Shown piece by piece: positions 755-5,857 of a stretch of DNA of 6,015 nt; the stretch's first letter is position 1, and every line of letters begins with the position of its first letter. Made by a program: the position numbers and the translations under genes. The stretch spans positions 1-6,015 of IMG/VR virus record IMGVR_UViG_3300023192_000822. One strand, given 5' to 3'. The notes under the pieces are model-generated. The model searched no databases. It was not told the origin of the DNA and worked only from the letters and a program-made list of their open reading frames with translations.

Positions 755-1050
755 AACTTTTCTGCTTCCTCAATTGACTTCCTTACATACGTACCTAGCA
801 TAAAAGCACATTGCATTAGACTTCTTACTTCTGCAACTGACCACGTACCTATAGGCTGACTATTAGTGATGCACAGATGCCCTTGTGGTAAAGAACAAAA
901 GAGCATATACAAAGCTGGGTCTACTCCAGGGGTTTTCAATAAACGTTCCCCTTCTGAATAAGAAGGATCCTTCATAGACCCTTCTAATAATTCAGACCCT
1001 AGAGTAGCCCACTCAGGCATTGATGAGTTATTTTCCTTATCCGTATTCAT
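748..1050 (-). CDS. Hypothetical protein, 100 aa (MNTDKENNSS...)
   Basis: The ORF track starts at TTG 1092. ATG 1050 is preferred because it forms an ATGA overlap with the stop of the 24-aa ORF, and the 1092 start would lie inside that ORF. Confidence 0.7.
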   Translation of the reverse strand: MNTDKENNSSMPEWATLGSELLEGSMKDPSYSEGERLLKTPGVDPALYMLFCSLPQGHLCITNSQPIGTWSVAEVRSLMQCAFMLGTYVRKSIEEAEKLW

Positions 1051-1121
1051 ACTATAATAGACGCTAACACTCCAAACACAATTAAGATCCAAAGAGCTTT
1101 CGCAGGGTCGTTGATTTCCAT
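1047..1121 (-). CDS. 24-aa single-pass membrane peptide MEINDPAKALWILIVFGVLASIIV
   Basis: Hand-read. Strong SD GGAGGTGA (1124-1131) directly before the ATG, a promoter just upstream, a hydrophobic C-terminal stretch, and an ATGA overlap with the next gene. Confidence 0.7.
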   Translation of the reverse strand: MEINDPAKALWILIVFGVLASIIV

Positions 1122-1148
1122 GGTCACCTCCGCAAATTTAATGTCATC

Positions 1149-1177
1149 ATCTTAGCGCACTTGGCGAGATGAGTCAA
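1149..1177 (-). promoter_or_regulatory. Sigma70-type promoter TTGACT-17 nt-TAAGAT
   Basis: -35 at 1172-1177 and -10 at 1149-1154 with a 17-nt spacer. It is intergenic and followed by an SD and ATG. Confidence 0.7.
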
Positions 1178-1182
1178 GTGGT

Positions 1183-1257
1183 TGGGGGCATCATTTTCAG
1201 ATGCCCCCATAGGTGAGAATGGATCACCTCCTTACTCCCCAGACTCTGCGGGGGAGT
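1183..1257. other. Three adjacent inverted repeats (structured RNA/terminator-like element) containing a perfect extended SD / anti-SD
   Basis: Stems: TGGGGGCATC/GATGCCCCCA (1183-1209), AGGTGA/TCACCT (1211-1229), ACTCCCC/GGGGAGT (1234-1257). TGGATCACCTCCTTA at 1220-1234. Confidence 0.65.
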
Positions 1258-1259
1258 TC

Positions 1260-1487
1260 TTAATTCATATTAAAGCGTTGCACAACTACTTCATAAGGTA
1301 AAGTATTTACCACCGTGGGGCCGTGTTCCAATTCTAATTGTCTCCATACTAGCTGTAATAAAACCTGATTAAATATGGGGCCAATCTTTTCCGTCACTAT
1401 AGTATAGGCTTGCATAGGGTCATTAGGAAAAAATGGTCTAACGGCTTCTAATATATCTTTATATTTTTCTTCGTTATTATTAATCAT
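1260..1487 (-). CDS. Hypothetical protein, 75 aa
   Basis: ORF track. TAATG coupling with the upstream peptidase gene; ends immediately before the hairpin cluster. Confidence 0.7.
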   Translation of the reverse strand: MINNNEEKYKDILEAVRPFFPNDPMQAYTIVTEKIGPIFNQVLLQLVWRQLELEHGPTVVNTLPYEVVVQRFNMN

Positions 1488-2869: not shown

Positions 2870-2897
2870 ATTATACACCGATTTAGAAGAAAGTCAA
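2870..2897 (-). promoter_or_regulatory. Sigma70-type promoter TTGACT-16 nt-TATAAT with AT-rich upstream tract
   Basis: -35 at 2892-2897, consensus -10 at 2870-2875, and an AT-rich possible UP element at 2900-2929. It has the same ACTTGACT -35 context as the 1149-1177 promoter. Confidence 0.7.
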
Positions 2898-2929: not shown

Positions 2930-4429
2930 TTATAGATAGAACTCATTATCACGAAACCATTTGGAAAAAGATTTACGTATTGGAAAAGATACATCTATTT
3001 CCGTAGAGTACCAAGGATGCATATTTGTTTGAAGGTCTTTGTGTGCCTTAGCAGCTAACGAAGTATCGTAAGTAGGGGCATCAGCATCTAATTTCGTTCC
3101 CAGATGTGAGCCAGCTTCATTCACTACCCAAGGGGGTTTCATATGAATAGGGATACCGAAATCATCTGTCTCAGTTTCTATGACAGGGGTATACCTCATG
3201 GCTTCCTGTGGCTGTTCCGAAGGAAATCCATACTCCCGTAGTAATTGGTGATGTTCTGCTTGCCTTCCCCCAGTATTTAATAGGGTAGCAAAGGTAGCAG
3301 CCATATCTTTTGACGATGAAGGTTTACCTTGTTTCTCTACCCATGACAAGAAAGACCCAGTAAAATCAATTGACCCATCTGCTTTTTCCATTAACATAGT
3401 AAATTCCCTTCCTTCATCAATAGTTGGAGATTCATCCAGTGGCGCAAAAACTTTACAGTACATGTGGTCTTCAATCATGCCTTCAATTATATCACAGGTT
3501 TGTTCCTGCTTATTAAAGAACTTACAGGTACCACACATAATACCATTTTGCATTTCCACATCAGTAGCATTTCGATAGCCTGCGTCTGGCTGAGTAATTT
3601 TACCTTCTTCTTTCTGAAGAAAGCAACTACCATTACATTCCTGTTTCTCCATCAGACAGCTACCATCAATACAAGTAGACACAGCATCATGAGCTTTCAA
3701 TATATCAAAGACAGCACTTTGATTTACACCCTTTTCACAAACTGTAACTTCTGCAAGTTCCATTTCATCTACTTGCATATAGGGTTGTAAACCTTTCTGC
3801 ATATTTTGAGTTTTGGTTGCGCTTCCCGCAATAGAATAACTCTTTAGCTTACCCTCATTAACTTGATCCATAACCCGCTGTGCAATTTTTGTATCGTCCC
3901 TCAATTCCGTAATGAAGAAAAGTCCATTCTCACCTACACCAGATTTAAAAATCTGCCCACCTTTAGAAATATAGGCGGGTAATGCCCAACCAACTTGAAC
4001 ATCAGAGTGTAGTACCATTGTATTTCTAGTACGAAAATTCCCCATATACTTCTTGAAAGCTTTTTCTAGGGCTTGTGTAGTAATTAAATGGCCCTCTCTA
4101 TCAATTAATTCTACAGATGCGGGGCCACCTAAGATCATAGGCTCTCCCTCACTAAGTTTAGAGACAGCTTTAGAATAAGTTAGGTCATCTGGATACGCCC
4201 TAGCTAGAGTTATAGTTTCTGCCTTAGATGCTATTCCCGCTTTAAGCAAACGTTTATATTCATCAAGGGCATCAGAAATATCTTCTAAAGAAACCTTACC
4301 ACCATCTTGCTTTTCAATGGGCAGTATGGTAGCATCAATACCAACTGTTTGATACATCTCATTATTAGCAGCCCAGTTAGAGGGACTTGGAATATTTCCT
4401 ACTACAGTTTTAATAGCAGAGATTGTCAT
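2930..4429 (-). CDS. Multidomain HK97/XkdF-type prohead (capsid maturation) serine protease fused to Cys repeats, a HiPIP-like domain and an unknown C-terminal domain
   Basis: aa ~98-246: GGPASVELIDREGHLIT, MVLH141SDVQVG, GKLKSYS199IAG, ELAE227VTVCEKGVNQSAVFDILK are typical prohead protease motifs. aa 277-328: C299-x2-C302-x9-C312-x12-C325. Confidence 0.85.
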   Translation of the reverse strand: MTISAIKTVVGNIPSPSNWAANNEMYQTVGIDATILPIEKQDGGKVSLEDISDALDEYKRLLKAGIASKAETITLARAYPDDLTYSKAVSKLSEGEPMILGGPASVELIDREGHLITTQALEKAFKKYMGNFRTRNTMVLHSDVQVGWALPAYISKGGQIFKSGVGENGLFFITELRDDTKIAQRVMDQVNEGKLKSYSIAGSATKTQNMQKGLQPYMQVDEMELAEVTVCEKGVNQSAVFDILKAHDAVSTCIDGSCLMEKQECNGSCFLQKEEGKITQPDAGYRNATDVEMQNGIMCGTCKFFNKQEQTCDIIEGMIEDHMYCKVFAPLDESPTIDEGREFTMLMEKADGSIDFTGSFLSWVEKQGKPSSSKDMAATFATLLNTGGRQAEHHQLLREYGFPSEQPQEAMRYTPVIETETDDFGIPIHMKPPWVVNEAGSHLGTKLDADAPTYDTSLAAKAHKDLQTNMHPWYSTEIDVSFPIRKSFSKWFRDNEFYL

Positions 4430-5823: not shown

Positions 5824-5847
5824 GGGGGTGGGTATTATCCCACCCCC
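5824..5847 (-). terminator. GC-rich hairpin after the capsid gene (terminator/mRNA stabiliser)
   Basis: GGGGGTGGG-TATTAT-CCCACCCCC, a 9-bp stem 10 nt past the stop. Only a weak U tract (TCTATCTAT) follows on the minus strand. Confidence 0.55.
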
Positions 5848-5857
5848 CCAGGAAAAT

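Follow-up and report, generated by a model that had tools for sequence, protein, structure and literature searches.

To our knowledge, Shine–Dalgarno (SD) sequences that lack a start codon are known only as 5'-UTR stabilisers or as upstream ribosome-binding sites. The stabilisers, STAB-SD of Bacillus thuringiensis cry3A and the SP82 polypurine stabiliser, belong to Firmicutes, occupy a 5'-UTR position close to the 5' end and shield downstream RNA from a 5'-to-3' exonuclease (RNase J). Upstream ribosome-binding sites, such as those found by 30S-seq (E. coli focA -213) and the tisB standby site, are start-less 5'-UTR sites far from the start codon that raise translation of the downstream gene. 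Most upstream SDs found by 30S-seq depend on an SD-like motif; in 5' UTRs of E. coli, start-less upstream SDs bind the 30S subunit stably without initiator tRNA and, when placed more than 100 nt from the start codon, bring an approximately 10-fold gain in expression (preprint 10.1101/2025.04.04.647229). In RNA thermometers and riboswitch platforms, the SD is paired with a short anti-SD-like segment, which controls a start codon 5–9 nt downstream, and in icaR an anti-SD in the 3' UTR pairs with the 5' UTR. At the other end of the message, a ribosome at a stop codon covers roughly the next dozen nucleotides. In E. coli rpsO, RNase E makes its rate-limiting cut 10 nt beyond the stop codon, at a site that ribosomes shield (reviewed in PMC3997798).

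The phage element described here is best filed as a 3'-UTR, post-termination version of the known idea of a non-initiating SD. It shares with STAB-SD and SP82 an extended complementarity to 16S rRNA and the lack of a start codon, and both it and they are thought to act through 30S docking and not through translation. Unlike them, it lies between a stop codon on its 5' side and a strong hairpin and a promoter on its 3' side, has a hairpin that masks it and comes from a marine phage. It is start-less and far from a start codon, as are the focA-type and tisB sites, but a promoter lies between it and the next gene, and its SD is 14 nt long and structurally gated. Its place in the linker between stop codon and terminal hairpin matches that of rpsO, as does the proposed logic of ribosome protection; rpsO depends on transiently terminating ribosomes and has no docking sequence, whereas here a dedicated perfect SD would hold the subunit (PMC3997798). 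Its SD is paired with an anti-SD-like segment as in thermometers and riboswitch platforms, yet without the start codon that those control, and it resembles icaR in using SD/anti-SD chemistry in a 3' UTR, except that this 3' UTR carries the SD instead.

The window (the whole stretch of DNA that was analysed) is the entire 6,015-nt IMG/VR contig 3300023192_000822. The features that matter for the argument, in 5'-to-3' order of the gene strand, are as follows.

1260–1487, minus strand: upstream 75-aa ORF, with its stop codon TAA (1262–1260) 2–3 nt before hairpin 1.
1257–1251 paired with 1240–1234, minus strand: hairpin 1 (h1), ACUCCCC/GGGGAGU, with a 10-nt loop; its 3' arm abuts the SD.
1221–1234, minus strand: start-less SD core UAAGGAGGUGAUCC, which complements the last 14 nt of 16S rRNA.
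1229–1224 paired with 1216–1211, minus strand: hairpin 2 (h2), AGGUGA/UCACCU, a weak mask (-5.9 kcal/mol).
1124–1210, minus strand: 28-codon ORF from the ATG at 1210, judged to be no gene.
1208–1200 paired with 1192–1184, minus strand: hairpin 3 (h3), GGGGGCAUC/GAUGCCCCC, with a 7-nt loop (-18.3 kcal/mol).
1149–1177, minus strand: sigma-70-type promoter, TTGACT-17 nt-TAAGAT, beginning 6 nt after h3.
1047–1131, minus strand: after a short leader, ordinary SD GGAGGUGA (1131–1124), ATG at 1121 and the gene of a 24-aa membrane peptide, which is conserved.

All credible genes lie on the minus strand. Read from its 5' end, the window opens with the C-terminal part of a capsid gene and a GC hairpin, which are followed by small genes, one gene of 307 aa, a prohead-protease-like gene of 499 aa, a strong promoter and seven small genes that end with the 155-aa and 75-aa ORFs, after which comes the element. 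On its 3' side come the promoter and the downstream operon, which begins with the 24-aa membrane peptide (MEINDPAKALWILIVFGVLASIIV) and goes on with genes of 100 and 60 aa and a trypsin-like peptidase. The capsid gene is typed SU10_MCP in a longer relative, and Mom-like and DUF932 genes come next in longer relatives. The element is thus placed where the head module gives way to an accessory-gene module. Nearly all members of the family have a stop codon 18–28 nt before the SD (1–7 nt before h1), whichever gene lies upstream: the 75-aa gene or, where that is absent, the 155-aa gene. On the other side, relatives preserve the -35 and -10 hexamers and the distance of 17 nt between them but not the sequence of the spacer, which argues for a real sigma-70-type promoter; because it lies 3' of the element, transcripts that start there would lack the element. 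The site is ~110 nt from the next ATG, with this conserved promoter between them. Judged by the positions of stop codon and promoter, the element belongs to the 3' end of the upstream unit, or else to read-through RNA, and lies outside the primary 5' UTR of the next operon.

The window contains one exact 15-nt match to the 16S tail, on the minus strand at 1234–1220 (TAAGGAGGTGATCCA), so that the + strand at 1220–1234 reads TGGATCACCTCCTTA. The minus-strand sequence is perfectly complementary to the 15 nt that close the annotated 16S rRNA of E. coli, and these 15 nt are the annotated 3' end in 5426/5426 complete E. coli genomes, a reference tail that may differ from that of the phage's own host. 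By simple arithmetic, 2 x 6015 nt should hold an exact 15-mer ~1e-5 times; when up to 3 mismatches are tolerated, shuffled sequences still average 0.13 matches. All the remaining SDs and 16S-tail matches in the window, among them the genuine SD of the next gene (GGAGGTGA at 1131–1124), span 6–8 nt each, which makes the 15-mer an outlier. The initial annotation had recognised the + strand at 1220–1234 as the bacterial 16S 3' terminus, and so it is; the length of 15 nt that it gave is exact in the window, while among relatives only 14 nt (1221–1234) are conserved and the 15th base is A, T or G. Scanning with a covariance model of the family found one copy per locus and a single copy within 20 kb of a 71-kb contig, which rules out a repeated regulatory element.

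The same annotation had described three hairpins, with the SD partly sequestered in an AGGTGA/TCACCT stem, and this description holds: the stems are present and conserved, and folding of the 156-nt region yields -52.8 kcal/mol (z-score -3.78), a stability equalled by 0/200 shuffles. Hairpin h2 covers the 3' half of the SD, and its 3' arm is a 6-nt copy of the anti-SD region of 16S rRNA, so that AGGUGA of the SD pairs with an anti-SD-like UCACCU; in the predicted folded element, only (U)AAGG of the SD is left unpaired. Cofolding with the 16S tail is predicted to reach -57.9 kcal/mol, compared with -39.4 for the element alone. A fold this compact could by itself already protect the RNA, which makes a benefit from docking less certain. 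The last hairpin, h3, is GC-rich and 9–10 bp long. It has no U tract directly 3' of it in the window, where the tail reads AACCACUUGAC and a terminator scan makes no call, so h3 is ruled out as a canonical intrinsic terminator there; a weak U-rich tail, for example AAUUAUUUG, is present in some relatives. The missing U tract in the window also makes it less certain that transcripts end at h3.

Relatives were first gathered through homology of the flanking proteins, independently of the motif, and pattern scans of viral and metagenome collections then extended the set to 16 distinct variants, every one from marine samples and many from deep water. The element is kept in these ~16 diverged marine relatives, whose flanking protein is 59–90% identical, and the 14-mer is kept where the 155-aa flanking protein is only 59–79% identical. 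All relatives that retain the membrane-peptide module retain the element as well, down to those whose 155-aa protein is only 59–66% identical; in farther relatives without the peptide module, the element is missing too. The 14-mer is invariant in 14/16 variants, and the two substitutions (C to U in L010, A to G in L015) can both still pair with 16S rRNA as G.U wobbles. The spacing from SD to h3 is mostly 17–19 nt across the family, and two members (L041 and L047) carry at least 8 extra nt separating h2 from h3.

Over the three helices, 98.3% of alignment cells are standard pairs, compared with 41–55% when the partners are slid. Most of the covariation lies in h1, where compensatory changes (C-G to U-A) occur in 4/7 pairs, 97% of cells are paired and the loop varies in both length and sequence. 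In h2, none of the five inner pairs varies, and 3/16 variants lack the outer A-U pair; in h3, all cells are paired and variation is one-sided or G.U only (14 G.U cells). The covariation score was matched by 0/500 shuffles, a control that ignores the relatedness of the sequences; the slid-partner control and the G.U asymmetry are independent of that problem. Homologue collection with a covariation test had been suggested at the outset, and the ~16 relatives with compensatory changes in 4 h1 pairs bear out the proposed structure.

Read on the minus strand, the helices contain 22 G.U pairs and 0 A.C, and therefore the functional RNA would be the transcript of the minus (gene) strand. The same count rules out a functional + strand RNA that mimics the 16S end; the + strand 'copy of 16S' is, on this evidence, a by-product of the minus-strand RNA. 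The alignment as a whole identifies the element as a conserved, structured, strand-specific and non-coding RNA.

That it is non-coding follows from the reading frames. The ATG at 1210–1208 does lie 16 nt downstream of GGAGG, as the initial annotation had it, and neither this ATG nor its frames are conserved: it is lost in about half of the lineages (L002–4, L012, L015, L031 and L037), and 1–8-nt indels among relatives change every candidate frame. No start codon or reading frame is conserved across the aligned relatives, and for this reason we regard the SD as truly orphan. The 28-codon ORF from the ATG at 1210 and mini-ORFs starting at AUU or CUG are ruled out by their lack of conservation. 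A small protein gene is ruled out in the same way, since start, frame and length are not conserved across relatives. A hairpin-bridged split ribosome-binding site of the T4 gene 38/25 type would have a conserved AUG after the hairpin, and an SD-masking thermometer or riboswitch platform would have a start codon 5–9 nt after the SD with its ORF; the family has neither.

We favour, at a probability of roughly 40%, the reading that the element is a cis-acting 3'-untranslated RNA of the head-gene unit, which would dock a 30S subunit without initiation and shield the upstream message. The docking step, taken separately, is likely and the well-supported part. The 16S tail is the probable partner because it is the sole reader of UAAGGAGGUGAUCC common to phages of many hosts. 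Under the proposed mechanism, h1 and h3 would act as clamps and h2 as a weak mask, with only (U)AAGG exposed; this would be the toehold for the terminal CCUUA-3' of 16S rRNA, and full pairing between SD and 16S would then displace h2 with a predicted net gain of ~-18 kcal/mol. A ribosome terminating 1–7 nt before h1 would melt h1 and free its 30S subunit beside the opened site, and the position of the stop codon near h1 leads us to propose that docking is coupled to translation of the upstream gene. The docked subunit together with h3 would shield the stretch from stop codon to hairpin from RNases, which would stabilise the upstream message and mark the operon boundary before the next promoter. 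The sequence, its conservation, structure, strand and position and the lack of an ORF are observed; binding of the 30S subunit, its capture after termination and the protective outcome are what we infer in this scheme. A 14-bp duplex would free the 30S subunit very slowly, possibly costing the phage ribosomes, which is an argument against docking.

The layout reaches well beyond this family. An IMG/VR scan for the bare 14-mer returned at least 100 distinct sites (~100–104) in unrelated contigs. Among the matches listed, 41 are ordinary ribosome-binding sites, with a start codon 0–6 nt after GATCC, and 63 are sites without a usable start. What sets the start-less sites apart, among these matches, is an ATCT (mostly (T)ATCTC) 1–5 nt after GATCC, found in 28/63 of them and in 2/41 of the real sites; ATC occurs in 30/61 start-less sites against 5.5 expected, and ATT and CTG, with 3 each, are at background. 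A second scan, for the 14-mer followed by N0-5 and ATCT, found at least 81 sites in at least 51 sequence-unrelated clusters. The counts of both scans are lower bounds, from a sample that may be uneven.

Among the matches listed from the ATCT set, 57% have a 14-mer whose TAA terminates an ORF of at least 60 codons. The (U)AUCUC(C) segment can pair with (G)GAGGUG through G.U wobbles, and among the matches listed at least four bases of the SD core are masked in 73% of ATCT sites versus 41% of real sites, with mean mask energies of -6.1 and -3.8 kcal/mol, respectively. The spacing of ATCT, again among the matches listed, peaks at N = 3, which suits a 6-nt loop over the P-site codon. A strong hairpin begins 1–10 nt after the mask, and a U tract makes it terminator-like in 61% of the sites listed versus 30% of controls, a background that reflects a permissive detector. 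The next gene among the matches listed has its own SD and an ATG 80–130 nt downstream, and the contexts of the class include the junction before T7 gp11-like tail tubular genes as well as holin–endolysin junctions.

An ATCT that served as a near-cognate AUC start is ruled out on three grounds: ATT and CTG show no enrichment, the spacing has its peak 2 nt beyond that of real starts, and, with clusters collapsed, stop codons after ATC show no enrichment either. It fits better as the 3' arm of an SD-masking hairpin. Bypass or frameshifting at TAA-GGAGG was dropped, as ATCT has no consistent frame and no extended ORF follows it. AUCU is also present in three family members (L022, L037 and L047) and in a distant relative (L062), and h2 with h3 in the window is a family-specific version of the class layout. 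The covariance model of the family detects 0 of 100 other loci, so the class is one of shared architecture and not of homology; a function in common across the class is suggested by analogy.

We put forward tentatively, with somewhat less confidence than our reading of the element itself, that these are 'ribosome parking sites', a widespread and undescribed class of phage RNA in which an SD at a stop codon, a weak mask and a strong hairpin would hold the 30S subunit after termination. Each site would catch the 30S subunit as its ribosome finishes termination and keep it at the 3' end of the mRNA. The mask would be a weak, G.U-rich hairpin with the consensus (U)AUCUC, and the terminating ribosome would open it. 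The layout is seen in at least 51 unrelated viral lineages, and recurrence in dozens of unrelated phage lineages suggests a general, unannotated signal that gene callers and Rfam both overlook. If this is true, parking sites would control mRNA survival, read-through or ribosome allocation in infection, and a gated perfect SD in the 3' UTRs of phage operons would be a new place and a new purpose for ribosome–RNA docking, with possible reach to phage transcript stability, the setting of operon boundaries and competition for ribosomes.

Several other readings have to be weighed against docking at an operon 3' end. The element could instead serve the operon downstream, as a 5' stabiliser or upstream ribosome-binding site on read-through RNA or on RNA processed at h1; a 5' hairpin with a docked 30S subunit would then block 5'-end-dependent RNases or raise initiation at the peptide gene ~110 nt on, much as STAB-SD, focA-type sites or a standby site do. 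We consider this unlikely, although several features lean its way: the element is always inherited together with the downstream promoter and peptide module, whichever gene lies upstream, h1 followed directly by the SD looks like known 5' stabilisers, h3 without a U tract makes read-through plausible, and distant start-less SDs raise expression ~10-fold in E. coli (10.1101/2025.04.04.647229). Against it, the conserved promoter between element and gene yields element-free transcripts, the downstream gene has a strong, unstructured SD of its own, and the SDs of the wider class are followed by terminators with U tracts. The analogy to STAB-SD as a 5'-UTR stabiliser, which the initial annotation had drawn, is not supported in that form, since the element follows a stop codon, lies upstream of a promoter whose transcripts would lack it, and has its layout repeated in unrelated phages in front of terminators; RNA that reads through or is processed could alone have it at a 5' end. 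Rather less probable is a ribosome-controlled insulator or attenuator, in which a docked 30S subunit would draw the RNA downstream of the SD into its mRNA channel, prevent h2 and the 5' arm of h3 from forming and so alter transcription or processing at h3, with read-through set by how many ribosomes are available or by whether the upstream gene is translated. The short distance from SD to h3, mostly 17–19 nt, would make a docked subunit overlap the 5' arm of h3, the wider-class hairpin begins 1–10 nt after the mask among the matches listed, and elsewhere the distance between ribosome and terminator is reported to control termination efficiency (PMC4824070). Yet h3 in the window is non-canonical as a terminator, the spacing is not strict, given the at least 8 extra nt between h2 and h3 in L041 and L047, and the lead ribosome would probably be freed only after RNA polymerase has passed h3.

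A role in trans, in line with the ribosome sponge that the initial annotation had offered beside a structured ncRNA, is conceivable but improbable: an ~80-nt RNA (h1, SD, h2 and h3) from the operon 3' end would act as a ribosome sponge or competitor that titrates 16S tails and shifts translation during infection. Its perfect complementarity is far above what initiation needs, the flanking hairpins would give a nuclease-resistant small RNA, and a Caulobacter sRNA with the same initial SD (a weak Rfam similarity) shows that such RNAs exist. There is, on the other hand, a single copy per genome stretch with its SD half masked and no conserved promoter for a separate small RNA, and the phage's own SD-led genes would suffer too. 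The last two readings are poorly supported. One, which we regard as very improbable, is a protein-binding or DNA-level signal (an operator, an attachment-type site or a + strand 16S mimic) to which the 16S match would be secondary; the perfect palindrome of h3 stands 6 nt from the -35 hexamer and the + strand is a literal copy of the 16S end, but the 22 G.U against 0 A.C favour a minus-strand RNA, the half-sites covary instead of staying fixed, a conserved 14-mer equal to the anti-16S sequence is unexpected by chance, and 14-mer and layout recur in phages of many hosts whose sole common factor is the ribosome. The other, which we give hardly any credence, is a cryptic translation start, either at a near-cognate mini-ORF (in the window AUU, 7 codons, ending at a UGA in the h3 loop) or at the 28-codon ORF. 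Most of the family does carry AUU, AUC or CUG 5–7 nt downstream of GGAGG, and h2 is immediately followed by the ATG at 1210, as in a hairpin-bridged ribosome-binding site; four members (L012, L013, L031 and L043) nevertheless have no near-cognate codon there, frames and lengths differ among relatives, about half of the lineages have lost that ATG, and in the wider class ATC is enriched where ATT and CTG are not (30, 3 and 3 of 61 among the matches listed), at a spacing that fits a hairpin arm over the P-site codon.

Searches of databases placed the element outside described families. In Rfam, at a permissive threshold, the window hit only CC2171 (RF01867; 21.6 bits, E = 0.18, gathering threshold 75), the one model to score on the element; that RNA begins with AAAGGAGGUGAUCCA and ends in a GC hairpin. 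Membership is ruled out by the sub-threshold score and by 102 missing middle positions of the model, so the Rfam search that had been proposed ends with no family that matches the element. At the gathering threshold, Rfam found nothing at the start-less sites of 12 other loci. Megablast of the window against cultured phages gave no match, matches in genome collections were rejected as chance matches within coding regions, and no cultured phage with the element was found: of the wider-class loci, L137 had no match and L051 matched only in its tail tubular gene, and Clostridium phage phiCT453B, a relative of L207, has the same junction without the element. Protein searches with two other window proteins gave no match, and tRNA genes, sought as a clue to the host, were not found in the search. 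The only protein match was that of the prohead protease to haloarchaeal viruses, at 30% identity; the promoters and SDs argue for a bacterium as host, while the nearest cultured relatives of the protease are those haloarchaeal viruses.

A start-less Shine–Dalgarno (SD) sequence, TAAGGAGGTGATCC, followed 1–5 nt on by (T)ATCT(C), recurs across at least 51 viral clusters that are unrelated to one another (loci L051–L233, IMG/VR contigs), usually at a stop codon and ahead of a hairpin or terminator. The mask, the weak-hairpin arm that can pair with the SD, follows the consensus (U)AUCUC with marked uniformity across these sites, and none of the 12 loci searched against Rfam at the gathering threshold matched a family at the site. 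Examples on IMG/VR contigs are as follows:

L137:2877–2960, start-less SD site
L051:8700–8806, minus strand, start-less SD site
L114:1861–1990, start-less SD site

Two metagenome contigs that bear no relation to the family of the element carry TAAGGAGGTGATCCTTTGATCACCTTTGATCC, an SD with two partial anti-SD-region copies behind it:

L034:211–260, SD and two partial anti-SD-region copies
L036:165–215, SD and two partial anti-SD-region copies

L034, the one of the pair that was searched with the covariance model of the family, scored 18.6 bits (E about 0.03), far under the family members.

On the minus strand of L152, around the 14-mer, tandem SDs read TAAGGAGGTGATCC-C-TAAGGAGGTGGTCC-A-ATG, with a GC hairpin immediately 5′ of them. 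In L058, L211 and L212, CTATAAACCA is directly repeated three or four times downstream of the start-less SD and the ATCTTGAC motif that accompanies it.

Within the phage and its longer relatives L026 and L236, the following features were located:

Window 1047–1121, minus strand, conserved gene for a 24-aa membrane peptide (MEINDPAKALWILIVFGVLASIIV)
Window 2870–2897, minus strand, near-consensus promoter TTGACT-16-TATAAT, in the 76-nt gap 3′ of the 499-aa gene
Window 2930–4429, minus strand, gene for a 499-aa protein with a weak Peptidase_S78 (prohead protease) domain
Window 5824–5849, minus strand, and L236:5969–6002, long GC hairpin immediately 3′ of the capsid (SU10_MCP-type) gene
L026:4925–5800, minus strand, and L236:14822–15625, Mom-like DNA modification gene and DUF932 gene, in the operon 3′ of the element

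The hairpin element is absent from the 76-nt gap that holds the promoter, which shows that the SD element does not stand at every operon boundary of this phage. The GC hairpin behind the capsid gene has a moderately U-rich tail and lacks an SD; the L236 version has an SD-like 5′ arm (GGGAGGAG) and an anti-SD-like 3′ arm (CUCCUUCCUCCC).

The 24-aa peptide gene has a strong SD and an ATGA overlap with the start of the next gene, and it is omitted by automatic gene calls on the relatives, such that L236 shows a 218-nt 'gap' (10695–10913). Cultured-virus matches to the 499-aa protein are only the haloarchaeal tailed viruses HVTV-1 and HCTV-5, which align with one third of the protein at ~30% identity. 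The Mom-like gene matches Pfam Mom with E = 9e-52.
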